DNA from: Bugula neritina
Taxonomy: Eukaryota > Animalia > Bryozoa
Assembly: GCA_964035545.1 (NCBI GenBank)
Contig: OZ037771.1
Location: 7,679,208-7,743,207 of the forward strand
Direction: 5' to 3'
DNA: 64,000 nucleotides
Part shown: one piece after another, positions 1,101 to 31,000 of the stretch
Numbering within the stretch: position 1 is the first letter of the stretch
How the letters are laid out: the number at the start of each line of letters is the position of its first letter
Notes under the pieces: model-generated
Told to the model about the DNA's origin: nothing
Seen by the model: only the letters and a program-made list of their open reading frames with translations
The model's database searches: none
Program-made: the position numbers and the translations under genes

Positions 1101-3973
1101 CTACCACTCTCCATAGAATAAAGGAAACAAGTAAATCTTCCTTCTACCAGTGAGAGTATTTATAACCACAGGAGTCTGTGTCACGTAAACAGTTGGATTT
1201 CTTTCTCTCCTTTTACCAGATATTTTCCTCACTCTGTGCTTCACCTTTAAATATTTTAAAACTAAATATATGCTGTTGTTTGCAGACATCAAAATTTTTA
1301 TTTTTTTAAAATATACTAGATGGAAAACTAGAACAAATGTTATTCAAATAAAATATCAAGAAATTCTGTTCTAACAGAGATAATAGAAAGGTATCAAATC
1401 TGAAAAAACATAATATAATGTGCAGGAAGCTTATAAAAAGTATTATATATGAAATAGAGAACTCAGTAAAGCTCATTCACTCTGCATCTTATACTATGAC
1501 TATATCAAACTGCGACTATACTATACTATTACATGACGATGTTATACTATGACTATACTATACTATGACTATACAATAACATGACTATAATATTACACTA
1601 TGACTATATTATACTATGACTATACTACACTATGACTATAATATACTATGACTATACTATGACTATACTATACTATAACTATATTATTCTATGACTATAT
1701 TATACTATTGTAGTAATTTGTGCAATTACTGAGCGTGAGTTATTTACTTGCGTATAGTTAGCTGGTTATTCTGCTATCAATTACTAGGGTAGCTGTCGAG
1801 TACTTATATTTATTATCCACAATAAAGCATAAAACAAACATCACATCAAATTATCCTATACAACAGTCAACTACTAACACATGTTACTACTTTAAGCCTC
1901 CGCTTACAACAACGTGATATAATGTTAATAACCCGGGAAGTGTCACGTGAATCGGAAGCATATCTTCCGGAGCTGCTAATTGGTTGCTACATAATGGTCT
2001 AAGTATTCCAAAAGTAGGGAGAGGACGATTCCCGTATTTGTACTTTGCACTACTCACTACACCATGACTATACTATACTATGACTATACTATACTATGAC
2101 TATATTGTACTATGACTATATTATACTATGACTATAATATACTATGACTATATTATACTATGGCTACATATTATATTATGACTATATTATACTATGACTA
2201 TACTATAACTAGTCACTACACCTATACTACTGTGACTACACCACACTGACTAATATGAAAACAGCCTCCTCTGAATAGGAATTGATGTCACAGGAAGTTA
2301 CTCACAATATCAAATAAGTCAGCAAGATCACGATGACAGCCATGTCTGTGTAAAGTCCTGACAAGTGTTCTTATCAATAATGAGCCACCGTAATCAAACT
2401 TCATAGAAGCACTGTCTATTAAAATAACACAATGAGTTGAATAGTAAATATTACACAGTGTAAAGTAACAGTGAGTGACACTATCCAGTAAAAACTGGTG
2501 AGAAATGCTAATTGAAAATTTGAAAATTGGGTTATTTCAGCAACGAAAGGTATATCTTGAGAAAGTCACATGACTGGTGGGTTTCAAAACTACTTGATGG
2601 TGATTGGGAGTTGTGGCCCATGGTTTAGGTGAAAAGGGATTAACCACACAGAATTGTTTGTAACTTAATCGTCTCACTTTAAATTAAAAACATTCAGCTA
2701 GAGAAAATACTTAGCCGAGTATTTTTAGGCAGCAGAGTATAAACTGTACAGACTAGTGTATCACAGATTACATGAAAACTAGATAACTGTAACTCACACA
2801 CAAATGGTCTATGTACTCAGTTCAGGTTTATGAAAGGTCATGTGATTAGACAGCACACCACAGCTGCTACCTGCTCTTTTTATTCTATTTGTTACTAATT
2901 TTCAATTGAATAATGGATTTGCGTTTAAAATTTTGGCCGATAACACCCTGAGCAAACTTTATTAATAAAATTATGACAATCCTAAAATGATGCAAGAAAT
3001 ATTCGTTTCTTTCGGTGGACAAAATTCTTACTTTCAAAGCATGAGTGAAGGATTAGAAGGTCGTCAACATCAAAGTTCCTCTGTCCAGTTGAAGTCTCAG
3101 CTTCCTGTTGATGAGTTTTGAGAGCAGAAAGTTCTGGTGAGGAGGAGTTGGTACTCTGTTGAATATTCTGCTCAGTTTGACTGACTGAGTTACCTGATTG
3201 ATTAGTAACACATGTGATATACCAACCAGTATTCTATGTATATGTATGAAGACTAGAGTATCATATAATACAGTATTACAATAGTATAATATATTCTTAC
3301 TCGTATCATATCTACACTCACCAACTCTGCACGCCTGAATAACCACAACTTTAGGCTTGCCGGCCATGTTGGGAAAATTTGTAGAGTTAATGAGACTGTA
3401 GATCTGTGTTAGATAGACTGGCTGTGAGTCAACTCCATGAATCATTCCATTAGCTCCGTGTGCAAACAGAAACAGGAAGAACATACCATAAGTGTTATGA
3501 ATCTCATCTCTTGTCTCTGATTGAATACACTGGAGTATCTCCTGTATATGAATATAACACAACACACACAATATACAAACTCAAGCAAGCATATTTGTCA
3601 CATCTCGTACTAGCCTCTAGGAAGTTAGCTCCGTGAAACAAAAGTTAGCCTAAAAGCGAAGATTCTGCATTTCCCGAACTTGATAACTGATTCAATAGAC
3701 AAGTCTGCAGGCTATTATAACAGTGAAGTGAGACATTAACCACTATTAACTAGTCACACTACGTGATAAGAAAAGGGAGACAACTACAAGTAAATAGAAA
3801 TATACCTCAGCTGTGAGATCCTTCTGCTTCACAACCTCAAATCTCATCTTCCTGAACAGAGCAAATGTGTTGTCAACATCATAACTAGAGCCAAGTCTCT
3901 GTCCTATATTTCTATACTTGTTGTTGTTTATAATCAGAGCTCTTCCTCTGAATGGACTCGTCATCTTGTATAT
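1101..3973 (-). CDS. Caspase domain of copy A (5 exons: p20, linker, p10)
   Basis: IYKMTSPFRGRALIINN...QRLGSSYDVD...FLFAHG...GKPKVVVIQACRVG, linker, DLLILHSCFENSASMKFDYGGSLLIRTL...VKHRV...QTPVVINTLTGRRKIYLFP. Confidence 0.92.
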
Positions 3974-6900
3974 CTGTAGATACAGACTATGTAATTAGTT
4001 TAGTACTTATTCATCTCATATTATAAGCAACTGAAGAATAATGAGTTAAAAATCATCCATGAGTAGACTAATATGGTTTCGGACATATTGTGTGGCTTTA
4101 ACACAGGTGCCAGCCTTAACAGTGCTGGGAAAATTGAAAGTACAACCTGGCAGTTTGTTCCATAGATTAGTGACCATCATTCATACTTACCGTACCGTAG
4201 GCCGTAACAGCAAATATCAGCCATTTTTACAAATGTCTGAGCTTCCTGTATGGCATTGTGGTACGTTAGGATCAAGCGCTGCTTGATTCAAAAATGTTGC
4301 GGCGGCTTTCTATTGGACAGAAAAACTTTTGCGTCAACGCTCAAGGAGAGCCAAGGCTATACAGAGATAACAGAGAGGAGAGCCAAGGCTATAGAGAGAC
4401 AATAGAGAAGAGAGCCAAGGCTATACAGAGATAACAGAAAAGAGAGCCAAGGCTATACAGAGATGACAGAGAGGAGAGCCAAGGCTATAGAATATTCAAC
4501 ATGACATACAAACCTCTGAAGTGTTGATGAAGAGAGACTTGATACTCTGATTAGTAGTAGGAACTAGTGTCAACTTGGTAAGATCTTCTGAAGTGGAGGT
4601 AGTACCTTCTTCTTCGTCCGAAACATCACTCAGTACATCATCAGTACCAACAGTATGAGTAGCAGCTCCACTGTGTCCAATATTATCTACATGTACAGGA
4701 AACATCACATAAACAGCTCACAGAAATGTAATGAAACCAGCAACCTACAGGAACAACTTCAACTGTCAATAACAAACATGGAGAATCAGAAAGGAAGAAA
4801 GTTATTCCTAATCAATTCACTAGAAGTAAGTTTAACTCAAGATACCTGGTGGCTTGTAGTTGGTCTTCACAAAGTCACTCAGTTTCTGCAGCTCATCTCC
4901 AGAAAGCTGAAAAACTGCAATATAAGTATGAATTATGGAGGTTGCTATTACTTGGACAGTACATCGCCATCTAAATATTCTATAAATAACCCAACAGAAG
5001 ACAATCATACTAACTTGGGTGTAAAAGACAAGCTGGGATATCTCTGTATTTTCCACATCTACCAGGTGATGAATCTGAAGTCATGGGAAGGGATTCACCA
5101 TACTTTGGAGGTCGACACCAGGGTGGGTTGATGAACCTCTTTGGTCGCTTTTCTCCAACCAATGGGCAGTGAGCACACAAGTTGATACAGGTAATTTTAC
5201 TTGCTCCCCACCATAAGTTGAAGTACTTTACGGTTGAATGAACTGAAGTGGTCAACATCCTCCAAGCATTGCCTATCTGTCGACAAGCAGACGTTACGGA
5301 GATACTGAGTTTACAAGATTTGTAGTCATGCAGCAACTGCAGGGTGTAAGCTTCGTCTCTCAGCTCCACTCCATTCTTTTTCACAGCTTTTTCACTACAA
5401 TCCTGGATATCATTGAGAAGTTTCACAGAAATCTGGTGGTAAACGTACTGAGGGGGAGTCAGGCCACCAAACAACATGTCTACTGACAGCTTTACAGGTT
5501 GTCTCCTGGAGGCAGTCAAGTCGGTGAAATACTCCTGTGAGCAGTATGGCATAGTGTAACTTAGTTTCTGGGATGAATCTTTCATCTCGAATAACAACTG
5601 GAAAGATTGCAGCAATGCGACTGCCACCTTCATCTTGTCACTCGTGGTGAAGCTGGTCTCTGCTATCAGAAGATGCTGAAACAGCTTCTCACCCATCCCG
5701 CCAGTTCGAACAAACTCTTGAGCCAAATTATTAAACTCTGTTTTATTTTCTGTCAACAGAATATCAAGTGAATCCTCTTCAATCGCTGACCGTCGATTGC
5801 TCCACACTTCCTTCTCGTGAGTGAAGAATACGTGGAGCAGCTTTGTAACCACGGAGATGTCGTAGAATACCAGAGACTGCAAACTCTCCCTATCCTGGTA
5901 CCAAATGAGATGGCCGCTGTTATGCATGTATGACAGAATCACTCTCAGCTGGTCTTCACTTTCCAACTTGCATTCAGTGACAAGTTGAAGCACTTCTGGA
6001 AATGTCTTGTAACTTCCATGGAATGAGTTGAATGTTTGAGCAACTTTTCTCCACAGAGTAGGCACCTTCTTCACGACTAGTTTACTATCAGATATGATAT
6101 GACTTCTCAGCTGATCAAACACCTCTTCATATTCATCACCCACAACATATATATCTTGTTCTTGAAACATCTCTTGGCACTGAAAAAGAAAAACTTGTGC
6201 AAAGGAGCTGGAATAATTCTCTTTAGAATTTTCTTCTAGTTGTATCAAATTGAATACACTTTTGGTGTGGAAAAAGAACAGCCTTTTTAGCTCTTCAAAT
6301 CCATCTGCACTGTAAGCATCTCGGTGAGTGAAAACCAGTTTGGGTGCTCTGAGCCCGGGATTGGCCAGGTACAGATGTGAGAGCCAATCAAAATATGTGC
6401 ATCGAACTGCTTCATTACCATTCACTTCTAAACAGAGCTCTTCAAACTCTTTTAGATTCACAACCACAATAGGAATACAGTTCTGTTTCAACGTGAACTG
6501 GTAGGTAGATTGGTATATTTTATTGCCACCAAAATCTATGAACTGAAGAACATTGTCACCAACCACTAACTTTTCCATATTGAAGACACGAGTTATTTCA
6601 TCTTCCACTGCATCAGCCGCTCTATTGGTTAATTTCCTTTTGCCATCTGATCCCACCAGCGTTTTAGTCAGGCTGGTTTTGCCAGACAGCGATCTACCCA
6701 CTAGAGCGACCGTAGCTTCAGAAACTTCTACATGACCACCAGAACTAAGATCGTTATAATACTGTCTGATAGCTGGTAGTCCGTCTACACACACAGCATA
6801 AGGTGGAGATGTGAGTGATACACACATGTAGCAGTACAGTTTAGTCAGATTAGGCATGTTGAGAAGTTGAGGAGTTAAAGATGTCATCTGAGAGTTGAGT

Positions 6901-9900
6901 GACAAGTCTAAGACTTGGAGATTCTTGAGTTGACCAACACTACCAAGTAAGTATACAGTATAACTTTAGTATTATTCTATATCAAATGTGTTATGTTTAA
7001 AAGTAAAACTTGATTGAATACATAATAGTTAGGTATCTAATATAGCCTGAGAGAGAAATAGTGTTTGACAGCACAACTGTTGCAAATGACTAGAACACAG
7101 GCCAAACTGAAAATATACCGATTACTTGACTTAACAGTAAAACTATTACAGTGAAAAAATAGAGTATTGAGTCACAATTTACAAATTGTGTTACATGTAA
7201 AAACTTTGGATCTACAATAATACAATTGTAATATATGGAAATTGTATTATTGCAAAACTATTAAAGCCATGCGTAAAAGTTTTGACACCCTCATACATTT
7301 TTGCAGCTTTGAAAAATGGCTAAACAGGATGTTCAATCTCCTAATGTTTCAAACAATTTAAAGTAATGCCATAATGTTACATATGGTATTGTGTGTTGTT
7401 TTGTAATCTAACTAAACACATTTAAACAATTTCAAATAGATAAACTATATTTGCTCTTAGAAGTTCCTGATATGAAGTAAATTTTCCTGTGTTGTTTACC
7501 CATTTAGGTTAATTTTTGCCTTCATACCATTGTACATTCAAGGCAAAATAGTGTATTGTGAATGAATATTTACAAAGTTTCAATCTGGGAACAAACATTG
7601 CGCAACTTAAAATGAAACTGTATTACAGACTGAGTAAGCAGCAATGACATAATATACCTCACAATTCTACTATTTTCTAAACTCAAACTTCACTTCATTA
7701 TGATGAGTGGTGGAAGACAAAATTTTAGTAGACAGCAGTCATCAAACTAAGAAGTGTAATGTTTTGAATGTTAACTGCATGCATTAGAGTTGTTTGTTAT
7801 TACTGCATGAATCAGATGATTTTTGGCAACTGTATGATGTCATATTCTGCATGTATATAACATGAAGATTTACAAATAAATAGTTAGTTTTAGCTCTCAA
7901 CGAAGTGTAGTCTCTACAGCATAAATATAATAACTGCAACTTAACACAACATAAAAAGAAGTACTAAAAGAAAGAAGTAATTAGGTTTGGTTTTGCAGCA
8001 TTACAGAAAACTGGGGAGTGAGTTTTGGAATGTTATGACATTGGTGATTTCATACTTATAATTGGCTCATGAAAATTACTACTCTATGGCAAGAACTGGT
8101 GAAATAAAAATTTCTGAAAGATAAATTCATGCTGCCAGCTTTGTGGAGATTATGCAGAAAAAAGCAACTTTAGAGAAAGTATAAAAAATTTACTTTCTAC
8201 CATACTTTCCTAGTAAAAGAGAGGAAGTTCAAGTACTTCAGTGGCCCATGCAAAAGTTAAAATAGATTTATAGACAATACAAAGAAAAGTAGCTGAGATA
8301 AAACCAACTGACATGGTCCATTTAGCTAGAACTGTCATCAATGCATGGTACAGGATGTGAGATAAACTACAAAATCAGCTGTGCTAGTGGAGAATATGTC
8401 AGCCTACTGCCTAGCAGTCATTGGTGCTAATAGTTACTCACTCACACTGAAACACTGACATGTTATGTGCAAGAATCTTTTCACACACAGAAGACATCCC
8501 ATTCTACAATCTTCTTCATTTTGCTAACCAAATAAAGAGAAAATTTCAATTCACGCATAATTATGTTTTAGTGCAAAATTTGATGGTAAAGGGCTTTTTA
8601 GCACTTTTCTATCAATAATCTCGTGTTATACAGTTGAAAATTATCTAGAGTTGTAGCTCAGCCAATCAGTTCCATTATATACATATTCAAATATTTTTAG
8701 CATGTAAAATTTCAGAAATTGCAAATAAAGATGTAAACTTGTAAACAATTTGGGGGTGTCAAAACTTTTACTCGTGACTGTATAATATATTGCAAGCTGC
8801 AATCAGATTTATTCAAACTTAGTAATCTCTATAGTTTATATAAAATAGATGATCATATATGATATCTTATATGTTTACATAATAGTAAAACATATATAAC
8901 TAATATAACTCACCTGTCTGATAATGTATGTAAGTGACAGTCCTCTAGACTTAACTGTGTAAGTGACTCCATCTTTGGTATCACCTCAGGTAATGTTCCT
9001 AACTTATTACCAGACACAACTAATGTGTGTAGATGTGTGAGTTGGGAGAGACTGTAATATACATACAATATACCATGACTATAATTATACAAGTTACAGG
9101 AATATTATATGGTAGATATGCGGTGACTCTAAATTATTATTGCCTTGCAGGTAAGAATTGTGTCAGTTATCTCTGTTTTAGTATTATATCCACTTCATCA
9201 CTAGAGAGTAGGTATGCTGGGACTTCTAGTATCACTTCTATTATACTTTATTATATGTTTACATAATAGTAGAACATATATAACTAATATAACTCACCTG
9301 TCTGGTAATATATGTAAGTCACAGTACTGTAGAAATATCTCTGTAAGTGACTCCATCTTTGGTATTACCTCAGGTAATGTTCCTAACTTATTCTCAGACA
9401 CATCTAATGTGTGTAGATGTGTGAGTTGGGAGAGACTGTAATATACATACAATATACCATGACTATAATTATACAAGTGACAGGTATCTTATATGATAGA
9501 TATGCAGTGAGTCTCAATTATTATTGCTTTGTAACTTGTAAGTATGAATTGGGTAAGTTATTAGCATTTGAGTATTATATTCACTTTATCACTAGAGAGT
9601 GGGTATGCTGGGACTACTAGTATTAATTTTATTCTACTTTATTATATATGTTTACATAATAGTAGACTATATATAACTAATATAACTCACCTGTCAGGTA
9701 ATGTGTGTAAGTAACAGTACTGTAGACGTAACTCTGTAAGTGACTCCATCTTTGGTATCATCTCAGGTAATGTTCCTAACTTATTATAGGACACATTTAA
9801 TGTGTGTAGATGTGTGAGTTGGGAGAGACTGTAATATACATACAATATACCATGACTATAATTATACAAGTTACAGGAATATTATGTCAAACATGTTATG

Positions 9901-12900
9901 AGCTTTTATTATTTCTGCTCTGCAAGTATGAATTGTTTATAGTCTGGCAGAAAAACACCAATTTTTGACTTAGGTTCGCACCCCCGGATAAAGTTTTTTT
10001 CTCTCCTGATTATTCAAATATAGGGTCTAGGTAAATGTTTCCAGGTGGGTGTGGACTTCTTACCCTTGAGCATTTTGAGAAATTCAAGATGGCCGCCAGG
10101 CACCAAATGATTTTTTCTAATTCAAATGTACCTACCCATTGGGGCTAAATTTAAGGTTCCAATGCTTTGAAATCTTTAGAAATTAATATAATAAAGATGC
10201 ATGTGCCTTTATCATATGCATTATTGAGTAATAGGCAAATGATACCCAAGGGTAACTAAGCTAAGCCTTAATCATTCATTTTTTCAAGTTTAACCTAGCC
10301 TTGCCGTGTTTATAATTTCCTTTTATCTCTGCATCAGTTTGTTCTAACTTCATAAAAGTTTACTATATGGTGTGATTTTATATGCTGATTACAAGTATGT
10401 CCACCAAATAAAGCTGAAAGGAGTTCTGCAAACTTAAAATGCAACGTCATTGCCATATGAGTTGAATAGCAATTTATTTCCAACTGGCATGCCTATCGAA
10501 AAGATTTGTTGAGCTGCCAACTTAATAGTTATTTTCAGTTTTAAAACTTTAGCTATGTTTTTTAAAGTTATAAAAAGGGGTCAAAAATTTTAATAACACA
10601 GCACCAAGGCTTCTTAACATAATTTAATTGCTTTATTATTGACACATCATTTATCTAAATATTGACATTTTTGCTTTCGAAAACTATTTCTACAATCAGC
10701 CCATTTGACTTTTCCTCTAAAAGCATTTGCAACAGTTTTTTATAAATGAAAATGTATTTCATGCTGAGGGAAGTAATACATCTATTAGAACAGTGGTTCC
10801 CTACCTTTTTCATACCAATCCCCTTTCATTAACGTTTACTATTAATTTCTCCCCTTTTAATGACCTATGTTGGGTGCACTGGAACACTAATAGCTGAAAG
10901 TGGTTTGGTAGAAGTAGTTAATTCTACTTTTGGTTGTTTCTCCAAAATGCTAAATAGAAAAAGTTTCTCCAGAATGTACAAGGTTTGAGAATATTGGTGG
11001 GAGAACTGTTAAAGCTAGTCTTGATGAAAGTGTAATCACTAGCATGAAGGAGCTTGAAAAGATGTTGATTAAGATTGCAGAGAGCTCAAGAACAGCAAAA
11101 CTGTGGGCCATGTGCTTTATTGGACCAATTTTTACCATCAACACCCACATCATATCTGTTAGAAAATGAGACTGGGCCTTATACCTAGCAATAGAAGAGG
11201 AAATGCACTATCTGCATAGCGTGGAGGTCATGCCACAAGATGTAAGGATTGAATTCGCGGCTGGTAACCACGCAATGCATCATAAACGCGGCCAGCTCGA
11301 CGGCATCTGGTCAGACATGACCATTGAGGTGACCTTTGTGAGATTTGGTCACAGCAAGGGGGAATCATTGGCATCACCACTAAATTTGAAACTCTCAAGG
11401 TGTGGGTGTACAGCACTTCTGCATGCAACAAAATATAGTATGGCCTCAGTGACATCAGGGATGAGTCTGAAATAAATGCTTTCACTACTCATAAGGATGA
11501 GATGCAATCAAGAATCCAATCTGATTCAAAGGACAGGGAGTCTGTCAAACGGAAGATTGAACTCTGCAGTGACCCACTAAAAGAATGATGCCACCCAGTT
11601 GCTCTTGTCAATATTGAAGCAGATAAGTGCAACTGAGATGAGGATGCTTAAAAAAATTTACAATATGAATTGGGAAGACCATGTAACAAATGATAATATA
11701 AAGGAGGAGGCCAAAATAGAAGCTATCGCAATACACATGAGGAGAAGACCTCTTCAATAGTATGGACATGTGCGCAGAAGAGATATGGAGGAAGATATTA
11801 TAATGGTGGCTGAGATGAAGATACAGAGAAAGAGAAAGGGAGAGGGGGGAGGGGGCAAAAAAGGTTAACGGATACAGTGAAGGATGGCATACTGAAATGT
11901 GGCTTCTCAGATGAAGATGTTGACAATAGAATCAGATGACACTCTCTGATAGCACTTGGTGCCCTGCAAAACCGCTACTCATCTTGGACAACGGCGTACT
12001 GGATGAGAAAGTCTGAGACAAAGCCCTATGATGAACAATTTGCTGCCTTCCCATGGTCTCTCAGGGGCAACAATGTAGAATATTGGAAAGGGAGTCCAGT
12101 CATACTAAATGTCTTGGTAGAAGGAAAATGTGATTTGGTGACACTAGTGCTTTTTTCAGGATTACTATTCATACAAGCTACCAAGTTTATGCTATGTTGC
12201 TACAATTATGCAAAGTGCTCCTCCATGACATCTACAAGACAAAAGACTTGGGAAACCAAGGTCAGCAATGCTATTTGCGATGTGCCTTTAACTTATGTAC
12301 TTTGCCTCCTACAGATGAAGCTATTGGACAATGTCACCAGAGCACACCTCCAGGTAGCCATATGAAACTGCGGCATTAAGCCCACTAGAACATTGGTAAG
12401 TGATAGGGAATCTAATAGAATCTCTTTTCCCAAAAGGATTATGAAATGATGTTGTGCTTACACCAGACAGTATTATGAAGTAGATCATGTTAGTTAATTT
12501 GGTGTACACTCGACGGCTCTAGCTTTTGGCGATTTTTTACAGTTTAGCTGCTATTGTATACAGATTTTTGCCTCAAACTATCAAAATTTTAACAAATAAA
12601 ACTGAATAATTAAGGTTTTTCCAATTATGCATGATTTTCTATGTCTATTCCTAATTTATTATTACATTGAGATATTATATAGGCCGTGATGATTCACAAA
12701 TTTATATTCAGCTCGTATGACAATGACGCCGCGCTTAAATGTTGCAGGACCTCTTCCCAGTCATTTTGTTATGCATAGATAGAATCAGCAAATTCTATTA
12801 CCCCATATAGTAAGTTTCATGAATTTTGAGCAAACTTTAAAATGTTTGATCATAATCTGCTGATGTGTACTAAATAAAGTAAAATGGCCCAAATTCATTA

Positions 12901-15900
12901 AATGCTCCTGTGGAAGCCAACAATCATGTTAAACAACAAGATATGGCTATTCTAGTACATCTATCCCATGCACAGAGTTCTGCCCTTGTGAAGCAGTAAC
13001 AGGAGTGTGCTGCAATGAACTAACATTTCTAACAAATACTAATGTTAAAAAAAAATGAAAAAGGTGTTTAATATGAACATGAGTGAAAGTTTGTCGCATT
13101 TGTACGATTATATATACGTTCAATTTTAACTTTAGCTGAGCAATATGTTGCATCTGTATCTTTTTTTCACTTTTTATTTCCTGGCAATAAGTAATGTTTT
13201 TTTTCTATATCTGCCCAGTGCCCAAACAGTCATTCAAAAACCTTGTATCATTTCTCTGCACCATATGTGATGTTTTATTGAAGCAATTCCGATTTTTGAG
13301 CTGAAAAACATGTCTCTTAGCTCTTTACTTTGATTTCTTTTTTACTGGCATTGCACATATTCATTCTAAAAATGCACATCTATTTTAATCATCAAAAAAA
13401 TTTTGTTTTTGCAACATAATATAGACTTTATGCCGACTAGATTACGATTTTTTCATAATTGGCGGCCATCTTGGATTTCTCGAAATGCTCAAGGGTGGCA
13501 GGTCCACACCCACCTGGAAACATCTACCTGGACCCTCAAGATAAATAATCAAAAGAGAAAAAAACTTTATCCGAGATTGCGAACCTAACCCCCAGTTCTG
13601 CCAGACTATTAAGTTATTAGTGCTTATGAATTCAATTTAAAACTGGAGAGTTGGTATGCTGAGATTACTAGTATCAGTTTTATTATACTTTATTATATGT
13701 TTACATAATAGTAGAACATATATAACTAAGATATCTCACATGTCTGGTAATGTATGTAAGTGACAGTCCTCTAGACTTAACTCTGTAAGTGACTCCATCT
13801 TTGGTATCACCTCAGGTAATGTTTCTAACTTATTCTCAGAAACATCTAATGTGTGTAGATGTGTGAGTTGGGAGAGACTGTAATATATATACGATATACC
13901 ATGACTATAATTATACAAGTTACAGGAATGGTATACGGCAGATATGCAGTGAATATAAATTATTATTGCCTTGTAAGTATGAATTGGGTACATTATTTGC
14001 ATTTGAGTATTATATCCACTATATTATTAGAGAGTTGGTATGCTGGGACTACTAGTAATAATTTTATCATACTTTATTATATGTTTACATAATAGTAGAA
14101 CATATATAACTAATATAACTCACCTGTCAGGTAATGTGTGTAAGTAACAGTACTGTAAATGTAACTCTGTAAGTGACTCCATCTTTGGTATCACCTCAGG
14201 TAATGTTCCTAACATATTATAAGACACATCTAATGTGTGTAGATGTGTGAGTTGAGAGAGACTGTAATATACATACAATATACCATGACCATAAATATAC
14301 AAGTTACAGCAATGGTATGCAGTGGGTTTATAACATTATAGCTTTTCAAGTATGAGATGTGGAACTTATTTTTGTTTTTGTTCAATTTATTACTGTAAAG
14401 TTGGTATGCTGGGACTACCAGTTTCAGTTATATTATACTTTATTATATGTTTACATTATAGTAGATTATATATAACTAATATGTCTCACCTGTCTGGTAA
14501 TGTATGTAAGTCACATTCCCGTAGATTTAACTCTGTAAGTGACTCCATCTTTGGTATCACCTCAGGTAATGTTCCTAACTTACTAAAAGACACATCTAAT
14601 GTGTGTAAATGTGTGAGTTGGGAGAGACTGTAATATACATACAATATACCATGACTATAATTATACAAGTTACAGAAATATTACGTTAAACATACTTTGA
14701 GGTTATATAAGGTGAAGAACAAAAACAAGGACCAAGAAAAACACAGCTAACTGCCTGAGACTTGGAACTTGGAACTAGAATGACCCTCCTAGCTGTTCCA
14801 AACTTCAAGCTTCTCGGCCACTGCCAATGGGCCATGCAATTTGCAGATGATGTAATGCTGTGCAATGGATAGGCAAATAGAGTGATAGGTTAGAAGAACA
14901 GAGAAAAGAAAATTAGAAGATGCTGGACTAAAGCTGGGCAGAATCAAGACCGAGTACATGCTACCAGTGAGAATAGATAACAAGGAGAAGAAGAAATACT
15001 ATGACTGAGATAACTACAGTGCTCTGCCTGAGACTAGTGCTTTCAAATGTCTTGCAACTATAATAATCAGAATGGTGGGTTGTGGCACTGAAGTAGCTAG
15101 GAGGATTGGAGTGACTTGGGACAAGTGGAAGGATCTCTCAGAAGTGCTGTGCGATAAGAAGGTATCAACTAAACATACAGTACTTCTGTTTAGAATATCC
15201 ATTCTGTATGGTAATGAAACCTGGTCAGTTACTCATGGGATGGAAGACGGGATGAAGACAGTAGAAATGATACACAATTTTGGGATAACTTACGAGGAGT
15301 TGATGAATTGTATCCACCATATTACTGGAGAGTTGGTATGCTGGGACTACTAGTATCAGTTCTATTCTACTCTATTATATATGTACATAGAATTAGAACA
15401 CAGAGGGAATGTAGTATACTTACATACAAAATTAGCAATTAGACCAAAGTAAATATGGGAAGAAAGTGCTTTTTAAGAGATTAGATGATTCAGTGTAACA
15501 AATTGCTAAATCAAAAGAAGTTGTAACAATTTTCCTGTAAAGAGAATGTTGAAGATGGGTTTTGCTCTGCATGGCCCGACTTTGCTGCCAAGGTACCCAC
15601 CTGAGAATTACTGAATACAGAAGGAGAGTAAAAAAGTTGGACAAAAAAAGTAGATAAATCTCTGTAGCTTCAATTCACTTAAACTTGACTCTGATGCAAG
15701 TAAATTATGATGCAGTATAAAACTGGCCATAGGTGTGATAGTAGCTGTAAGGCAGGCAATAACAGGTAGGCCTAACTACAACTACTTTGAGATAATGAGA
15801 ATAAAGTGTTCACATCCCTGGACTAAGTATAAAGTGATTATAAAAGCTGGAGATACAATTGAGATAATGCTGATAGGTAGGAAGGGAGATCTTATGTCAG

Positions 15901-17757
15901 AGTGACTCTAGATTATTACTCATATGCATATATAAACTATAGCTGTGTTCAGAACACATTAAATATAGTTGATTGTTTTACTCCATATTTCATTACATCT
16001 AAAAATATAGAATTTTATCTAACAATTTCAACAACTTGAACAACTTCTAAAGTACCGACAATACACTGAAAGAAACGAAGACAAAACTAATAGCAGTGAA
16101 TACTTTGAAGAATATGAAACAAACTTAAGGCTACAAGCTCTGCAAGTAATATTATATTTGATTTGTGATTTCCTTAATGAATATTTAGCTATCCATTTCT
16201 CTATTGGCAGAATAAATATTAAAGGTTATCCCCACATGCAGGTAATCAGCTATGATGTGTGAGTCACCAGAAGTCATTGTTGACCTCTTCCCCAGCAGCT
16301 TCAGCTCAAACTAATATAACTCTATTTAAGTACAATAGTGGAAAAAATTCCATACTTTTAAATTCAATTCTTTATGGGTCTTTATGATTTTCTTTTCAGG
16401 GGTTTGATTGAACATAATTTAGTTTGCACTTTTTCTCATCAAGCACACAGACTTTTCCACAATTCCACTCTTACTGCACTCACTTTTATAATGCATGTCA
16501 AACAGAATGATTACTCAGGTGCAGTAGAGGTATGAAGGAATATTGCTGACATGCCATACAAGTATAACTCACTAACCATTTCAATATTCCAGTAAATAGT
16601 CAGTGAGTTACAACTGAAATACTGACAGCTAATTACACAGCTCAAGCATATATTATTATCCAAAGAGAATTCATGTTCTAGATAGAGGGATTGTGACCTT
16701 TAACATGTTGATAACAAAGTGATGATAGACCTACTATTCTAAACTGTTGATACTGGTTAGCCGTTGAATACACAAGGTAGTTACAAGTGGAGCAAACTCT
16801 GTAACAGCAGGTGGCAGATCTCCCTCTATCTTTAGGTCAGTGATCACATGACCTGAACAGAGCTTCTTTATTTCCTCCTTTGTATAGAATTTTGTAGATT
16901 TGGAGGACAACTCTCTTTTGTTAATAGGATCCATACCAGAGTGCCTCCACCAACACCTGTATTTCTTTGCTAAAAACAAATGTTCTATTTTTAGTATATA
17001 TGTACCCAATTATAGAGTAAATATAATATCACCTGGTTTATAGTACATTTATATATGTTAATATTCTAATAGTATAAATTACATCATTTTACTGTTGAAT
17101 TACTTATATAATAATTGAAAATATAAACCAGCAGTAAACATATTCCTATATTCAAAGAGACAAACATACTAATTGTTGAGGCATCAGCATGAAGATTAAT
17201 AGGAATAAAAATGATACTTATTCAACTTTTTATATCAGGTAGACTGAGAACAAATGAGAAACTTATCTGATAGACAATGCTGATGTTTTTATAAAGTTTG
17301 ACACCCACTTTACGACAGAAAATGTTGATATAAAAGAAAATATTAGAAAGTATAAGGAATAGTGAGAATGAGAAGTAACCTAGGTTCTCATGTAACCCAG
17401 AAGTTTCTCAACAGCTTTAATTGTCAAGTTGACAGCTTCATTAAACAACCCTTAGATGGAAAGTTACAGAAAGTCTGCTTCATTAAGCTACATGCAGATA
17501 AAAGTCACAGAAAGTGTACAGAAACACCAAAGTATAAATATAGTTCAGAGAAGAAACTTAAAGGGGGATAACAAAGTCTTTATTTTAACTTTCAAGTTGG
17601 AAGATGTAATTGAAACCTATTCAGGTATATTTAAAGAATACTGTATTCAGGTGTGTATTTTACCATTCTCCAGACCAACTAATATTGTATACGGACCTGT
17701 TTGTGAGGTTGCTGCTGTTACTTCATCCTCAGAACTGGTTACAGAGTTGGTAGCCAT
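1101..17757 (-). CDS. ROCO-caspase copy A: LRR-Roc-COR-caspase fusion, ~1364 aa. Coding exons: 17757-17697, 16969-16735, six LRR exons (14627-14490, 14261-14124, 13877-13740, 9828-9691, 9435-9298, 9051-8914), 6939-5015, 4914-4846, 4686-4514, 3973-3806, 3541-3322, 3193-3032, 2415-2306, 1244-1101
   Basis: All exons have AG/GT boundaries with compatible phases and sum to 4095 nt (1365 codons including stop). Motifs: LRRs; hinge PPYAVCVDGLPAIRQY; P-loop GRSLSGKTSL; G3 DFGG; G4 VFTHRD; COR-like LSYMHNSGHLIWY; caspase RGRALIINN, QRLGSSYD, FAHG, GKPKVVVIQACR, DLLILHS, GSLLIRTL, QTP...TL. The exon-1 donor is uncertain (17697 or 17664, both phase 1). Confidence 0.88.
1490..2210. repeat. 16-bp minisatellite (ATACTATGACTATATT)n in the last intron of copy A, interrupted by a solo-LTR-like insert
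   Basis: Direct tandem repeats visible in sequence. Confidence 0.9.
1709..2061. mobile_element. Solo-LTR-like element (TGTAGT...ACTACA)
   Basis: Inverted TG..CA termini; flanks ctat/ccat (near-TSD); absent from the copy B intron; related termini at 50122/55520. Confidence 0.6.
4346..4490. repeat. 32-bp tandem repeat (GAGAGCCAAGGCTATACAGAGATAACAGAGAG), ~5 copies
   Basis: ccaagg recurs at 4351, 4383, 4415, 4447 and 4479. Confidence 0.9.
5015..6939 (-). CDS. Large exon of copy A: last LRRs + Roc GTPase + COR
   Basis: ORF 5010..6905. Acceptor ttggtag|TGTTGG, donor CCAA|gttagt. Roc G1/G3/G4 motifs present, MFHAS1/LRRK-type ROCO layout. Confidence 0.92.
7262..8782. mobile_element. Degenerate Tc1/mariner-like non-autonomous element
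   Basis: Inverted termini gccatgcgtaaaagttttgacaccc / gggtgtcaaaacttttactcgtgactgta next to TA. Copy B keeps the left end (~36939) and has lost the right end. Confidence 0.55.
8914..9051 (-). CDS. LRR cassette exon A6 (138 nt, two 23-aa LRRs; VVSGN / QLSLEDCH)
   Basis: tattacag|TCTCTCC...GACAG|gtgagt, phase 2-2. Confidence 0.9.
9298..9435 (-). CDS. LRR cassette exon A5 (DVSEN / EIFLQYCD)
   Basis: Same 138-nt phase 2-2 unit. Confidence 0.9.
9691..9828 (-). CDS. LRR cassette exon A4 (NVSYN / ELRLQYCY)
   Basis: Same 138-nt phase 2-2 unit. Confidence 0.9.
9940..13608 (+). mobile_element. Decayed DNA transposon, Academ-like, between LRR cassettes A4 and A3
   Basis: TIR TAGTCTGGCAGAA / TTCTGCCAGACTA, subterminal inverted repeats (caagatggccgcc / ggcggccatcttg), 3-bp TSD TTA. 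Frameshifted transposase-like remnants (GIWSDMTIEVTF; LPPTDEA...RAHLQVAI). Contains nested MITE and LINE fragments. The superfamily assignment is an inference. Confidence 0.7.
13740..13877 (-). CDS. LRR cassette exon A3 (DVSEN / ELSLEDCH)
   Basis: Same unit; donor GACAT|gtgaga. Confidence 0.88.
14124..14261 (-). CDS. LRR cassette exon A2 (DVSYN / ELHLQYCY)
   Basis: Same 138-nt phase 2-2 unit. Confidence 0.9.
14490..14627 (-). CDS. LRR cassette exon A1 (DVSFS / ELNLRECD)
   Basis: Same 138-nt phase 2-2 unit. Confidence 0.9.
14780..15300 (+). mobile_element. Decayed RTE-like LINE fragment (related copies at ~45760-46500, ~42350-43020, ~11620-12000)
   Basis: Broken frames such as EVARRIGVTWDKWKDLSEVLCDKK...ILYGNETW resemble the region C-terminal to a non-LTR RT. 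Confidence 0.6.
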
Positions 17758-22045: not shown

Positions 22046-25000
22046 CTACCACTCTCCATAGAATAAAGGAAACAAGTAAATCTTCCTTCTACCAGTGAGA
22101 GTTTTTATAACCACGGGAGTCTGTGTAACAGTACCTTCTGAGTCGGATCTGTTACCTGATATTTTCCTCACTCTTTCTTGTACCTTTAAATATTTCATAA
22201 TCAGGTAAACATTGGTCAGTATTACTGACACTACAGCATGAGTTAGAATGTATCGCATCTGTAAATTCACCTACTAGAAAAAATTGTATTTGTGAATAGC
22301 AAAATTATATATACAAATAGTAAATCTATAATAAATTCAATTATATTGATATTGAATAGAGTGGAGACTACATAGCTAACACCATAATATACTGTGATGG
22401 TATTACTATACTACAGTGTATTATGACTATAACATAGTATGATTATAGTATATTGTAAAATATTTGTGAAGGAAAGATTCTATTTGCGTGAGAATGATTA
22501 CATATTGCTATGACTATATATTACTACGACTATATTATACTATGACTATATTATACTATGACTATATTATACTATGACTATATTATCCTATGACTATATT
22601 ATACTATGACTATATACTACTATGACTATACTATACTATGACTATATTATACTATGACTATATTATACTATGACTATATGATACTATAAAAATAACTCAC
22701 GCAATTTTTTAGTCGCTATCTCTGTGAGAAAACCCCTGATGGAAGGGGTTTTTGTTAAAGCCGGCTAAGGACTTATTTAAATGAGGCACAAGAGCAATTA
22801 TGACTGGATGCTCTTCCTAACATCACCAATGGCCTTCGTCTGGGGTCGAGCCCATGACCTTCAGGCTTACTAGGCAAATGCTCTAACCCCTAGACTACGG
22901 CTGCTCCCTGACTATATGATACTATGACTATATTATACTATGACTATATTATAATATGACTATATTATAATATGAATATACTATACTATGAATATACTAT
23001 ACTATGACTATATTATACTATGACTATATTATACTATGACTATAATATACTATGACTATACTATACTATGACTATATTATACTATGACTATACTATACTA
23101 TGACTATATTATACTATGACTATATAATACTATGACTATACTATACTATGACTATATTATACTATGACTATATATTACAATGACTATATTATACTATGAC
23201 TATATACTACTATGACTATATTATACTATGACTATATTATACTATGACTATATTATACTATGACTATACTATACTATGACTATATTATACTATGACTATA
23301 TAATACTATGACTATATTATACTATGACTATATTATCCTATGACTATATTATACTATGACTACACTATACTATGACTATATTGTACTATGAATATATTAT
23401 ACTATGACTATATTATACTATGACTATATTATAATATGACTATATTATAATATAGTCATATTATACTATGACTATATTATGACTATATTGCACTATGACT
23501 AGTCACTACACCTATACTACTGTCACTACACCACACCAACTAATACGAAAACAGCCTCTTCTAAATAGGAGATGATGTCACAGGAAGTTACTCACAATAT
23601 CAAATAAGTCAGCAAGATCACGATGACAGCCATGTCTGTGTAAAGTCCTGACAAGTGTTCTTATCAATAATGACCCACCATCATGGAATCTCATGGATGC
23701 ACTGTCTATTAAAATAATACAATGAGTTGAATAGTAAATATTGTGGTAGATTTTAGTGGTGCAAGTATATTGTATTAATCGAAAAGGTTTACTCTATATT
23801 GTTTTATGTATCTTGTGAGTTCGACACTGTCGGAGTGTAACTATGGACAGTAGTGGCACCATTAGTAGCCACCAATCAGGACAGTGACACTAATTGATAG
23901 CAGGTGGAGCTAGCTACTCGTAGTTGCAGTGCGCTGAGTAGCTAGCCGGCAGAGCAGCTTGGGACTTCATTTAGAACAGTTGTGTATTAAAGCTCACTAA
24001 TTATGTAATCGTTTTCTATTCATGCTAGCAGTAAATAACCTTCTTGTATTTGTGTAAATAATAAAGTATCTTATCGTAAACAACCTGTCGCAGTGGCTTT
24101 GATTAAGTAGACCCACAAATAATAATAGTGAACTGGCAAAATTCACTACACTGGTGGCAGCGGTGGGATCTCACTTAATACAAATGCCCCTAGTCAGGGA
24201 GTAAGATGGCCGACGAAGTCGTCGACGCGCCCCGACAGGAGCCAGCAGCAATAGAGGAGGATCACATAGGCGGCCCAGCGCTGCCTATGGACAGGTACCA
24301 CTTGCGGGCTCCCACCTTCTCTGGAGAAGAAGATGTGGAGCAATTCATCACTGAGTTCAGTGATGTGGCGGACATCTGCGGATGGCCGAACAGGGTTACT
24401 CTGATCCAGCTGCGGTTGTGTCTGACAGGGCCGGCTAAACCCTATGGGATAAGCCAGAATGTCGGTGACATATTTGAAGCAATACGAGCTAGGTTTGGAT
24501 TAACCGCTCGAGATGCTCGCGTGCAACTGCAGAGTCTTAGGAGAAATCCTAAGACCAATCTGCGAGAGCACGCTACCGTAGTCGAACGACTGGCACAAGT
24601 TGCTTACAGCGACTTGCCTGCCGATGGTCGACAGAGCCTAGCACTGGATGCATTCCTCCAGTCCATTAACAACCTCGGTCTTAAACAGCATCTGCTGGTG
24701 GCCGAAGTTGAGACTATGGAGAGAGCTCTAAGGCTTGGGAATGCCTATTTCCAAGCCGACAGTGCAAGTCGACCTGGCGCGACAGTACAGCAAGTCGGGG
24801 CAGACGACGTGTCGACGTCGTCAACGAAGACAGCTGTACAAGTCGCAGCGGCAGCAGCAGACGAATCTAGCTTAACCACGAGCTTGATTCGAGAACTGCT
24901 CGCCGAGTTCAGGCAACTGCGCCAGCAGGCGACAGCCGAGAGACCCAAGAGGTCGTCGGTAGCTGTCGCCGACAGGCGCGGCCCCGTATGCTGGGGCTGT

Positions 25001-28000
25001 GGTAGTGGTGGGCACTTCCTACGAAGTTGCCCCCGCGGCAGTGGGAGGCGGTTAAACAGCGACGGCCCACGGTAACTTCCGCCTACCGTGGGCCCGAGTT
25101 TAACCCCCCAAGGCAAAGGCTACGGCCCCCACCCCATCGGGTGAGGAGGCCGCCTTCGCCAGAGTGGCAAGTCCCAAGGAGAGTGAGTCGGCCGCAAGGC
25201 CCACCAATACCTCCGGCTTGGGCACTCAAAAACCGCTTTGAAGGTTTGCTTGATGAGGGAGTGAACGACGAATGGGAGCACAACAGGGATTTTCCTCGGT
25301 TGCCCACACGAGCATCAGTCCGAGAATTCACTCGGCCGCCCGTGTGTGAGCGAGACCGAGACGTACCCTGCCCGCCCATGCAACGTCGACGACCCCCTCG
25401 CAACCGAAAAGCACAGGTGCATCCCCAATTCCATGCACATGAGGTGTCGCCTCAAGAGACAAATCGCTCAGTGAGCGCCCAGCCATATGGAAGCAGCTAT
25501 TTCCTCCCCGGCAAAATTGCTGGTAAAGCTGCCACATTCCTGTTGGATACTGGGTGTACCACAAATCTACTGAGTCGACGTCTCTTCGACACTCTCAGTG
25601 CCAAGGACAGGGCTAGCCTAGAACCATATGAGGGGGAACGCGGCACGTTGGCGGACGGGTCGTGTATTCCTTTCTATGGGGTAATCCAGTTGACTGGTAG
25701 AGTCCGTGATCAGATGATCAGTGAGACCTTCATCGTCAGTCAACTCAAGGAGGATGCCATCTTGGGCATGCCATTTCTGAAGCGACACAGGTGCTACATC
25801 GACTTTAGCAAGTCGGCAGTAGTGATGGCGGGGCGTGAGCTGGCCTGTGTCGACCGATTTGGCCGACCCTTGGTGGGGGGAGTGCAGGTGGTACAGCGCT
25901 GTACTGTACCTGGGCGCTCCCGGGCTACAGTTCGCTGCAGAGTGAACTGTAGGGAGATCTCCGAGCTCGGAGTGGTGGAAGGTGCACTGGGGGGCGTCCA
26001 GCTCGCTAACAGTCTGAATAGACTGGATGAGCGGAGGGAGTTCCTGGTCCAGTGCGTAAACCCTTTCACGGAGCCGGTAGAATTACCGGCTGGGTCTCTA
26101 GTAGGGAAGTTCCACTCCGTGCAAGAGGAGGATGTAGGGCCCGCGCTGGAAACAGCGGGCGGTGCCCGGGGAGTACCCACTAGAGACGGCAGGGGGCCGG
26201 TGCCTGAACACGTAGCAGAGTTGTACGAGGATGCCTGTGATGGCTGCGAGAGCAAGCGAGAACGCCTGGAGATGGCGCGGCTACTCTCTGAGTACAAGGA
26301 TGTGTTCAGTTGCGGCGACCATGACATGGGTCTGACTGAGACGGTTCGTCATGAGATACCCCTGGCGGCGGGGATGGTGCCGATTCGGCAGCCGACCCGC
26401 CGGTTAGGTCCTGAGAAGGAGAGAGAAGTGAGCCGTCAGGTGCAAGACCTTCTGAACCGGGACCTGATTGAGCCAGGCCATGGGGCCTGGAGTTCTCCAG
26501 TCGTCCTGGTTCGGAAAAAGGATGGTAGCTGGAGGTTTTGCGTTGATTATCGCAGGCTGAACAGCGTGACCATCCAGGACGCTTACCCTCTCCCGAGGAT
26601 TGATGAGTCGCTCGATGCCTTAGCTGGTAGCAAGTTCTTCAGCACGTTAGACTTGTTAAGCGGGTATTGGCAGGTGCCCCTGAGTCCTGAAGCACAGGAC
26701 AAGGCCGCGTTTATAACGCGGGATGGGCTCTGGAAATGGAAGGTGTTGCCATTCGGACTTACGTCCGCACCAGCCACCTTCCAGCGACTCATGGAGCAGG
26801 TCCTGAGTGGACTGCACTGGAAGACCTTGCTCATATATCTCGATGATGTCATCGTCATCTCCCCCGACTTCGACACACATGTCAGTCGACTCAGGGAGGT
26901 GTTCGACAGACTCCGAGCTGCTAACCTGAAGCTGAAGCCCTCGAAGTGTGCATTACTGCAACGCGAGGTCAAGTACCTGGGCCATGTAGTTGGTCGAGAC
27001 GGGGTCGCCACCGACCCCGAGAAGGTACGGGCCGTGAGGGACTGGGCCGTTCCTGTCGACCTCTCTGAATTGCGGGCATTCCTGGAGCTGGTTGGGTACT
27101 ATCGTCAGTACATACCAGACTTCGCAGGAATTGCACAGCCGTTAAATCGGCTGACCGCAAAGGGGGTGCGATGGCAGTGGACGCAAGCTGAGCAGAAGGC
27201 ATTTGACCACCTGAAGGATCGCCTGGTGGAGGCACCCATCTTGGCGTATCCTGACCCTGCGAAGGAGTACATTTTGGATACTGATGCCAGTAACCATAAT
27301 GTGGGGGCTGTGCTATCGCAGGTCCAAGATGGTCGCGAGGTGGTGGTAGCTTACTATAGCAAGGCCCTGTCGGCGCCTGAGAAGAACTACTGTACAACCA
27401 GGAGGGAACTCTTGGCAGTAGTCAAGGCGGTCAAACACTTTAGACCATATCTATACGGGCGCACATTCCGGCTTCGGACGGATCATGCGTCCCTGATATG
27501 GCTGTGTCGACGGGCAGAACCATCCAGCCAAGTGGCGCGCTGGCTAGAGATCCTGGCAGAGTTTTCTTATCGGATCGAACATCGACCCGGTAAGAAACAC
27601 GGTAATGCAGATGGACTCAGCCGCCGCCAGGCAGATGGGTGTAAGCAATGCCAGAATATCGAGCGCAGGGACGGTGGACCCCCTCGCTCGGACGTCGAAG
27701 CGCAGTTGGGGAAAGCGGGTGTGTACAGCTGGGAAGAAGGGCAACTCCTGTCCGAATCACCCAACAAAGCTGTTAACAACCTTCACGCAAACCCCACGTT
27801 GCTTCGGAACGTCAGGGAGCTATGTCGGCTCCAGTCCACGCTACCAGGAGTGGTAGCTGACCTAGTCCGGGCCAAGAAGGAGGGACGGCGGCCGAGTGAG
27901 GCCGAACAGCGAGTGAAGAGTACTGAGTTTAAGTACTTCTGTGACCGCTGGGACTCCCTAAGGTTCAACAGCGATGGGCTGCTAACGATCACGTTGGCAG

Positions 28001-31000
28001 TCGGCACCAATCGCAGTGAACGAGAGAGGGTAGTCTGCCCGTCAGCTCTGCGGCGGGAGTTGATCTGGGACACCCATAAGCAAGCTCACGCAGGAGCTAG
28101 CCGGGTGATCAGGTGTCTTCAACTCCAGTGGTTTTGGCCCGGTATGACCCGGGATGTCCGACTCCGGGTGCGGAAGTGCGAGGTGTGCCAAGCTAGCAAG
28201 CATGGCCGCCCCACTGAGACCGCAGGGAGGCGTCGCCTCCATGCCGGTCGTCCGTGGCAGGTGGTTGCTGTCGATCTGGTAGGCCCCATGCCCACTACAG
28301 CGAAAGGTAATAACTGGATACTGGTATTAACTGACCATTTCACGCGGTGGTCTGATGCACTGGCTATTCCAGATGCGTCGGCCCCCTCGGTGGCCAGAGC
28401 TCTGGATCAACAAGTGTTCTGCTATTTCGGCTTGCCGGAGCAGATACACTCTGACCAGGGCGCCCAGTTTCAGTCGCAACTTATGAGCGATCTCTGTAGA
28501 ATGTGGGGGGTAAACCAGAGTCGGACGACCCCGTATCACCCGCAAGGGAACGGGGTCGTGGAGCGGAACAACCGAATGCTAGGGGATTCTCTGAGAAGCC
28601 TGCTTATCGGTAGGAGCCAGGAAGAGTGGGACTTGGTGTTGCCGCAGATCATGCGAGCGTACCGTAGTACCCCTCACTCCAGTACACTGGAGACCCCTAA
28701 TTTTCTCATGCTGGGGAGAGAAACAAGGGTTCCTGAGCACGTAACCTATCATGTTCCGAATCCAGAGAGCAATGTCCACGACTACGTGGACAAGCTCGTA
28801 AAACGCATGGGGACGGCTCACGAGGTGCTACGTGAGCAGCAGTGGCAGGTCAGGAGTGGTGACTCTGACGACCCACCTTTATACAAGGTGGGGGACTGGG
28901 TCTGGATGACCAGTCATCGCCGCAGGCGCGGACAGGCAGCCAAGTTGCAGCCGAAGTTCGTAGGTCCCTACTGCGTAATTGAGGTAATGCCAAATCATAC
29001 ATACAAAGTGGAACGGTCTGGACAAGTGTCGGTCCAGAACGAGGCACGGCTAAAACCTCACTGGGCAAGTCCTGATGCGGCAGGTCAAGCACCTCCTCTC
29101 TTAGAGCCAGCTAGGCGCCCTCCTATGAGGGGGCGACCCATGGCATATCGAGAGATTGAGGAGATACTGCCAGACCAGGACGGGGCGGCTGATGCGCCAG
29201 CCGACCAGCCCCAACCTCCTCCACCCCAGGAAGAGGAGGTCGACACACCTGAAGACCTGTCGGAGCCGGCACCACCACCTGTGGAGCCGGTCGACAGGCC
29301 CATCGTCCCGGATGAGATGGCAATTCCTCAAAATCATGAGGAAGAGGCAGCTGGGGGGGGACCACCCGTACTGGTGGACCCCCCCGTACTGGCGACACCA
29401 CCCGTGGTGGAAGAGTCACCAGTCGTAGCAAATTCCCCAGTGCAGTTGGAGCGTAGCCAACGCACTAGGGCGCCTCCATCTTATTTAAAAGATTTCTTGT
29501 GTGATGCAGTGGAAAAACATCCAGCAGCTATCATAAAAGAAATCTGGGGGGACGAGCAATTGAGAGTTGCGTTTCCAAGGTATAAGGAGACGCAATTGTG
29601 AGTTGCCTACCCCAGTGGTGTGACACAAAACACCACCGGGGGTAAGAAATGAGCGAAGTCAGCTCGCTAGTGAAAGGGGTGTTATACAATCACTTTCACT
29701 GCGGAAAGCGTTCTTTTCTGATTCAACTGCCAACGTGCACGCATGTACTTGGCAGGCTGGCGCACTACGTAGCCTAAGTGAGCAGCAGACTAAAGTCAGG
29801 GCTGTCTTATGGTAAGTCTACTAGTATAATTCTATTATTTAAGTAGAATTCAAGCTGGTAGCCTAAATCAGTCTCGCTTTATCATAACGATAAAGTTGAT
29901 TTCCCAAGTCAGGTGATTCACTGATGACTTGAGTGGGGCGGTCGACCACATGATTAATTATTAATCAGTGGTTAGTGATTGCGAGACTCAGTCGAGGTGT
30001 CGTACTGACAGGTGCAAACCCCTTCAACAGTTGTTGGCATTCTGTTGCAGGTGAGACTGGAATGGCGGGGCCAAATTCCTTCTCATGGCATAACGCAGTC
30101 ACATTATTCATCTCAACTTTTGGCTAGATGCTGGCTGCTTGACTAGATTCTTGTAGCGACATGACAGCAGTGCTGATGGCTGTCATCACAGAAGTGCCAG
30201 AGACAACTGGCACGTAGCTCCTTCCTCCCCTCCTCTGGCGATCACGTTCCGGTATAGGCAGAGTAGTTCTTCCCTCTTCTCCCCTGTGGCTACATCCTAA
30301 TAAGAAGAAGAAGTAATATTAAAGATTCCTGCATGAAGTTAAAAAGTAAAAATAGAAGTTAAGAAGAAGAAGTAATACTAAAGATTCCTGCATGAAGTTA
30401 AAAAGTAAAAATAGAAGTTAAGAAAAAGAAGTAATATTAAAGATTCCTGCATGAAGTAAAAAGAAAAATAGAAGTTAAGAAGAAGTCTTCCCTTTCTTCC
30501 TTTTGGGAATTCGACGGCGACGAGGTAGACGTTGGTAGTAAAGAGACCAGTCAACCCCCCCTCCATCTTTCCCCCCTTTGGGGAGATTCCTTCCACTCTC
30601 TCCCCCCTTTGGGAGAGACTCCTTTGCCACGCTTGATTCTTCTGGGGACTCATCGATTCCCCCATCGCTTGGCTTCGACTAGACGAGTGTGAAGCAGTAC
30701 ATCTCCTTCTCACTAAGTTCATGCTACCCTACATCATTTGGTGAAGAGATTCCCCCCCCCTACCCTGTGACTGACCCGGATCGATCGTGTACAACATGGA
30801 CATCGTTTTGAATACATATTTTGTGTTCTCTCATTCCTGGTGGTTTTGATCTTTTTGTTTTATTTTGCCTTTATTCCTTTTGTTATTTTTTTGAGATTAT
30901 GTGCATCAATCGTAGAGTGTACTTTTCGATAGGTGTGGCGAGTGTGGTAGATTTTAGTGGTGCAAGTATATTGTATTAATCGAAAAGGTTTACTCTATAT

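Follow-up and report, generated by a model that had tools for sequence, protein, structure and literature searches.

In brown-algal ROCO genes (PMC3341825, PMC11378527), leucine-rich repeats (LRRs) are carried on repeated, symmetric phase-2 exons upstream of Roc and COR domains, the concave face of the repeats is under positive selection, and the genes are clustered, turn over by birth and death and have a proposed immune role. Bacterial LRR-AP-GTPase-COR-effector proteins, which are predicted counter-invader systems, join fast-evolving LRRs and Roc-COR to a C-terminal effector, caspases being among the effectors (PMC8195603). In Podospora, the het-d/het-e NWD family, tied to non-self cell death, exchanges repeats within and between paralogues, varies in repeat number and shows selection on few surface codons (PMC1805685). 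Here we describe a 64,000-nucleotide stretch of the bryozoan Bugula neritina (assembly GCA_964035545.1, contig OZ037771.1, positions 7,679,208–7,743,207; hereafter the window), in which two paralogous genes, A and B, carry arrays of two-LRR cassette exons together with Roc, COR and caspase domains. We propose that the cassettes are probably modular exons of a germline-diversified binding arm in a one-chain intracellular LRR/Roc-COR/caspase receptor.

Architecture of the cassette genes

A six-frame scan and self-comparison identified ten cassettes in the window, all on the minus strand. Gene A carries six (A1, 14490–14627; A2, 14124–14261; A3, 13740–13877; A4, 9691–9828; A5, 9298–9435; A6, 8914–9051), and gene B, the paralogue upstream of gene A, carries four (B1, 46626–46763; B2, 45460–45597; B3, 45077–45214; B4, 42097–42234). 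Each exon comprises 138 nt between AG and GT, divided into 1 base, 45 codons and 2 bases (phase 2-2), and is open across 46 residues that form two 23-aa LRRs; all ten differ from one another in DNA and in protein. These are exactly the ten cassettes of the original prediction, whose span of 8914–14627 holds for the six of gene A and fails for the four of gene B, located at 42097–46763. Its lists of variable residues are exact for the ten at codons 11, 14, 34, 36, 37 and 39, and codons 16 and 32 vary too. Near-invariance at synonymous sites, also predicted, applies to the central scaffold codons 17–31 (third-position diversity 0.015) and not to the whole scaffold, where synonymous diversity (piS) is 0.072, close to that of adjacent intron (0.07–0.08), and eight codons show synonymous variation among the ten window cassettes.

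Gene A consists of two 5′ exons, the cassettes, a 1925-nt LRR-Roc-COR exon, two linker exons and five caspase exons, all on the minus strand. Exon 1 (17697–17757; 61 nt, with the ATG) is present in all six paralogues of the cluster described below, and exon 2 (16735–16969) encodes an N-terminal cap and a first LRR-like turn and ends in a phase-2 donor. The interval separating exon 2 from the first cassette yielded no convincing additional exon, and no signal peptide was evident on inspection of exons 1 and 2. The large exon (5015–6939), entered through a phase-2 acceptor, encodes the last two LRRs, the Roc GTPase and COR. It is followed by the linker exons (4846–4914 and 4514–4686), by exons for the caspase large subunit and linker (3806–3973, 3322–3541 and 3032–3193), which contain the His (AHG) and Cys (QACR) motifs, and by the small-subunit exons (2306–2415 and 1101–1244) and the stop. 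Gene B, on the same strand, comprises exons 1 and 2 (49196–49256 and 48310–48544), an LRR-Roc-COR exon (34688–36609) and caspase exons with an intact frame (32978–33145, 32221–32440, 31931–32092, 23596–23705 and 22046–22183). All splice sites of the gene A model are canonical, and its reading frame is uninterrupted whether none or up to six cassettes are included (1088–1364 aa), in keeping with the predicted frame compatibility of these phase 2-2 exons; the spliced model was joined for this frame check only, and searches were run exon by exon.

In gene A, Roc (29.5 bits; Pfam cut-off 27) and COR-A (36.4 bits; cut-off 35.3) both pass, and Peptidase_C14 also matches; the COR-B match is weak and under cut-off. 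P-loop and DFGG motifs are recognizable in the predicted Roc translation. No match to NACHT or NB-ARC was obtained in the Roc-COR exon; the nucleotide-binding domain is Roc. Gene A thus belongs to the ROCO family, in which Roc is followed by COR, and an NLR (STAND) receptor was rejected because Roc takes the place of NACHT or NB-ARC. The best protein matches came from B. neritina (89%; 93% over part) and Watersipora subatra; a search of protein representatives returned generic LRR proteins only, and a short-protein search found no transcript-derived product.

The top matches of the caspase region are metazoan: CED-3, caspase-2, caspase-8 and caspase-3. The AHG and QACR motifs occur in all six paralogues, small-subunit exons were found, and the first Arg and the Gln of the Asp-binding pocket are retained. 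The small-subunit pocket residue is Arg in genes B, D, E and F and Lys in genes A and C, as judged from a weak alignment. The small-subunit exons (1101–2415 and 22046–23705 in the window) are of two types that differ in their substrate loops and in Lys versus Arg at the likely Asp-binding position; one is found in genes A and C and the other in B, D and E, and F is mixed. The large-subunit exons are near-identical.

Selection and exchange among cassettes

The window belongs to a tandem cluster whose six paralogues carry 4, 6, 6, 2, 5 and 4 cassettes, and all 27 of these are 138 nt long, phase 2-2, intact and distinct. A concave set, fixed beforehand as the x positions of xxLxLxx, covers 10 of the 45 codons. 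In these codons nonsynonymous diversity (piN) is 0.29 and piS 0.074, as against 0.027 and 0.072 in the remaining codons, and the set holds 76% of the amino-acid differences (permutation p=3.5e-5; p=6e-4 with non-core positions only). With our own implementation of the codon models, M2a was favoured over M1a by a 2dlnL of 155 for the maximum-likelihood (ML) tree and of 252 for a star tree, and the a-priori omega was 7–9. With either tree, codons 14, 34, 36 and 37 are assigned to the selected class, which on the ML tree also takes in codons 11 and 32. Omega at the exposed sites of the 27 cassettes is far above 1, and the predicted diversifying selection on exposed LRR positions is borne out by these results, by allele counts and by cassettes from outside this genome. 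In the tree-free count, recurrent alleles were more numerous at nondegenerate concave sites than at fourfold sites (p=0.001). Pairs matched for their flanks differ at 0.23 of concave first and second positions and 0.06 of intron positions, over five pairs that are not independent. A further check used 12 intact cassettes obtained outside this genome, from metagenomes and a second B. neritina assembly: of their 52 amino-acid changes, 41 affect the six selected codons (11, 14, 32, 34, 36 and 37).

Variability extends to the repeats on either side of the array. The first 50 codons of the Roc exon, which encode the two last LRRs, have a piN/piS of 2.0, and in the LRR turn of exon 2 piN is above piS (paralogue ratio 1.45). 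Roc-COR (0.26–0.42) and the caspase (0.41) are under purifying selection.

Turning to the arrangement of the cassettes, the distal intron flanks can be sorted into a small number of recurrent types, whose order differs from gene to gene. Two upstream and two downstream types occur in all four combinations, which requires exchange inside the cassette unit. Scaffold divergence is alike within and between flank classes (0.046 and 0.054), and exon distances within genes equal those between genes, as expected under homogenisation. The original prediction also implied that cassette number varies; this stands between genes, which have 2–6 cassettes each and differ from locus to locus in number and order. 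A second B. neritina assembly contains two genes with cassette layouts unlike all nine of this genome, and none of the 12 outside cassettes is identical to any of the 27 here. No one-to-one allele was found for the second-assembly genes, the best pieces matching at 84–89%, and the differences may reflect alleles, paralogues or sibling or cryptic species.

Several fragments accompany the arrays. Copies of the cassette downstream flank that lack the exon lie at 15299–15424, 44718–44843 and 46880–47005 and may be remnants of cassettes that have been lost. Between cassettes F1 and F2 sits a 68-nt duplicate of the exon 2 3′ end (C7:7592942–7593009, locus L010), a scar of illegitimate exchange. In other Bugula samples (L028:5695–6817 and L029), a truncated copy beside a TMEM33 gene retains one intact cassette, one cut cassette and no more of the Roc exon than its initial ~96 nt.

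Family extent and known relatives

A second cluster on the same contig (C7, 5.04–5.11 Mb) contains three genes with 5, 3 and 5 cassettes; these 13 cassettes are known by coordinates only and lie outside all sequence comparisons, which use the 27. The cassette subfamily thus totals nine genes and 40 cassettes. Of the six paralogues in the first cluster, four are intact, and in the other two the Roc-COR exon is interrupted by a premature stop, in line with a family that evolves by birth and death. The genome as a whole contains at least 70 Roc-COR exons (132 candidates) on several contigs. It also gave 139 matches to caspase exons, and cassette-like matches of a more distant kind number at least 110. 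In coordinate lists compared by hand, 69 of the 70 listed Roc-COR exons have a same-strand caspase exon no more than 16 kb downstream. A literature search, with most subscription papers outside its reach, returned no description of an animal LRR-Roc-COR-caspase family or of its cassette exons, and this large bryozoan gene family is apparently unstudied. A loose, exon-wise search of the whole genome returned a single, weak match to NACHT and none to NB-ARC, set against at least 70 ROCO-caspase genes; this is only a hint that NLRs may be scarce or absent in Bugula.

In two Watersipora genes, two-LRR exons of 141 nt, again phase 2-2, share the boundary of the Bugula exons and have a similar acceptor, so that the cassette-exon design seems common to at least two bryozoan genera. 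The acceptor (L021, L025) is almost that of Bugula, although Roc-COR protein identity is ~30%. Of the ten positions that vary in one Watersipora gene, nine are x sites of the concave face. For the other homologue, an AlphaFold model built from a single sequence, which serves here as a stand-in and has its LRR part mostly at pLDDT 70–90, predicts that the LxL motifs lie on the beta-strands of a regular LRR solenoid.

Among the known systems, the brown-algal ROCOs and the fungal NWD repeats provide the nearest parallels. The original prediction had drawn the first of these, with Ectocarpus, aptly, since the Bugula cassette genes are themselves ROCO genes. The algal exon is 72 nt long and encodes one LRR, whereas the bryozoan exons of 138 or 141 nt encode two; the bryozoan genes, moreover, belong to an animal and have a full caspase fused at the C-terminus, the word caspase being absent from PMC11378527. 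Given the two LRRs per exon and the fused caspase, the bryozoan cassette ROCOs work like the algal type but are not members of it. The bacterial proteins, which share the domain order of the Bugula genes, differ in being prokaryotic and predicted only, and the bryozoan caspase fusion looks independent of theirs, its best matches being metazoan caspases. The Podospora family diversifies in a similar way but, in contrast to the LRR exons on a Roc-COR GTPase seen here, places WD40 repeats on NACHT proteins. Animal MFHAS1/MASL1-like ROCOs, the RefSeq name given to the Watersipora homologues, share the LRR-Roc-COR core without a kinase. Amphioxus P0051 (LRR-Roc-COR-glycosyltransferase) has 46-aa double LRR repeats; its first 1188 residues, LRRs included, are uninterrupted by introns and its effector differs. 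Among the genes compared, only those of the two bryozoans had exons of the cassette design. The C-terminal domain of other LRR-Roc-COR proteins is a GT4 glycosyltransferase (amphioxus P0051) or an OTU protease (P0053), so animal ROCOs may accept different domains in the effector position.

NLRs recruit their caspase in trans. NLRP3 and related NLRs (PMC6642158) resemble the bryozoan genes in their symmetric two-LRR exons and in placing a sensor upstream of a caspase, but have a NACHT ATPase and 171-bp exons of 28/29-aa repeats. Because human NLRP3 has such two-LRR exons (PMC6642158), symmetric two-LRR exons are not special in themselves.

The variable lymphocyte receptors (VLRs) of lampreys and hagfish are extracellular, with a variable concave LRR face, and their germline gene is incomplete and filled somatically. 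The comparison with VLRs made in the original prediction holds for the variable concave binding surface and not for the mechanism of assembly: the bryozoan cassettes are spliced exons, and the products are apparently cytosolic. VLR-type assembly was rejected, as the cassettes have intact splice sites inside complete open genes.

The window is also rich in mobile elements. A decayed, Harbinger-like DNA transposon, flanked by an apparent 3-nt TTA duplication and bearing inverted arms of 129 nt, occupies the A3–A4 intron of gene A (9940–13608, strand unassigned) and divides what was probably a single tandem array of ~380-nt units. A Ty3/gypsy-type long terminal repeat (LTR) retrotransposon with long gag and pol frames lies in a gene B caspase intron (23742–31351); its 409-nt LTRs are 100% identical, and it is a very recent insertion. 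A second LTR retrotransposon (50414–55511), with 722-nt LTRs that are 100% identical and a 1350-aa frame, lies just upstream of gene B, and a LINE-type element (38231–42090; 239-aa and 953-aa frames, simple-repeat tail) directly adjoins the donor of cassette B4.

Origin and likely function of the cassette diversity

Together, these features are probably best read as those of a single-chain intracellular receptor whose binding arm is diversified in the germline. Unequal crossover and gene conversion between near-identical ~380-nt units would generate the repertoire, on whose concave face positive selection would then act; the fungal NWD repeats and the brown-algal ROCOs offer precedents. Binding of a foreign or damage ligand to the concave face could shift the Roc-COR monomer-dimer cycle, a cycle documented for Chlorobium Roco and LRRK2 (PMC6337361); two caspase domains would thereby be brought together and activated in the manner of an initiator caspase, with cell death or a defence signal as the outcome. 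The data allow exon skipping without requiring it, and the cassette diversity is adequately explained by a germline origin.

Several points weigh against this proposal. The immune role rests on analogy with other systems. Gene A has Lys where gene B has the substrate-binding Arg (a weak caspase-4 alignment, E 0.8), and the specificity or activity of its caspase may therefore differ. Within the 138-nt exon, the PHI test was not significant (p=0.5) and no mosaic triplet survived correction, probably owing to few sites and much recurrent change; the case for recombination consequently rests on the flank types and on homogeneity. Finally, recombination can inflate the omega of codon models, for which reason three tree-free checks were added to the tree-based tests.

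Alternatively, the genes could encode a combinatorial receptor, with cassette subsets spliced per cell (up to 64 forms for gene A) or somatically rearranged, so that diversity arises within one colony. Every cassette is frame-symmetric, and LRR exons have been shown to be alternatively spliced in brown-algal ROCOs (PMC11378527) and in NLRP3 (PMC6642158). The RefSeq model of a Watersipora homologue takes four of the five genomic cassettes, which may be a mere gene-prediction choice. Frame symmetry, however, also lets germline duplications survive, and introns of at least 228 nt do not force mutual exclusion. In a single duplex test for Dscam-like docking-selector pairing between conserved flanks, those of A5 did no better than shuffles (p=0.2). 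We regard splicing or somatic rearrangement of this kind as rather unlikely.

Bryozoans are colonial. This mode of life admits a second reading, in which the protein and its germline diversification are as we propose but the ligand is conspecific non-self, with death at fusion borders during colony allorecognition, as for Podospora het-d/het-e. The het-d/het-e genes likewise combine homogenised repeats with selection on few surface residues (PMC1805685), and no cassette is common to the 27 of this genome and the 12 from other samples. At least 70 genes on several contigs, however, better fit a broad pathogen repertoire than one or two histocompatibility loci, and exons 1 and 2 lack an evident signal peptide; allorecognition is quite an unlikely role. 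A bolder view, that bryozoans use at least 70 one-chain LRR-Roc-COR-caspase receptors instead of NLRs and diversify them within the colony by combinatorial splicing or somatic cassette exchange, is a long shot; if true, it would describe an invertebrate intracellular variable receptor wired straight to a death protease.

Neutral tandem duplication with relaxed surface constraint, or an assembly artefact, could be entertained for very similar units in a transposon-rich region, but is very improbable. Omega at the variable sites is far above 1 rather than near it, all 27 cassettes are intact and distinct, and the pattern recurs in an independent assembly, in metagenomes and in Watersipora; this explanation is refuted unless recombination alone yields a piN four times piS at pre-chosen sites. 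Local hypermutation of the variable codons in place of selection, whether deaminase-driven or like that of a diversity-generating retroelement, is hardly credible and already disfavoured: positions 1 and 2 of the hot codons do show up to four bases, but their third positions are almost fixed, which favours selection over a mutational hot spot, piS in concave codons matches that elsewhere, and eight fourfold-degenerate adenines are invariant. A diversity-generating retroelement itself was rejected on the invariance of these adenines and on finding no invariant template copy among the 27 cassettes.

Our literature search found no study of bryozoan immune genes. A germline-diversified LRR/Roc-COR/caspase receptor would mean that ROCO receptors with shuffled exons under positive selection, known from brown algae, also occur in an animal, apparently through convergence, and are there attached directly to a caspase. 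With a near-constant scaffold and six variable codons per exon, swap experiments would be easy to design and to interpret, and caspase activity would offer a simple readout for what switches Roc-COR on and for how bryozoans recognise non-self.

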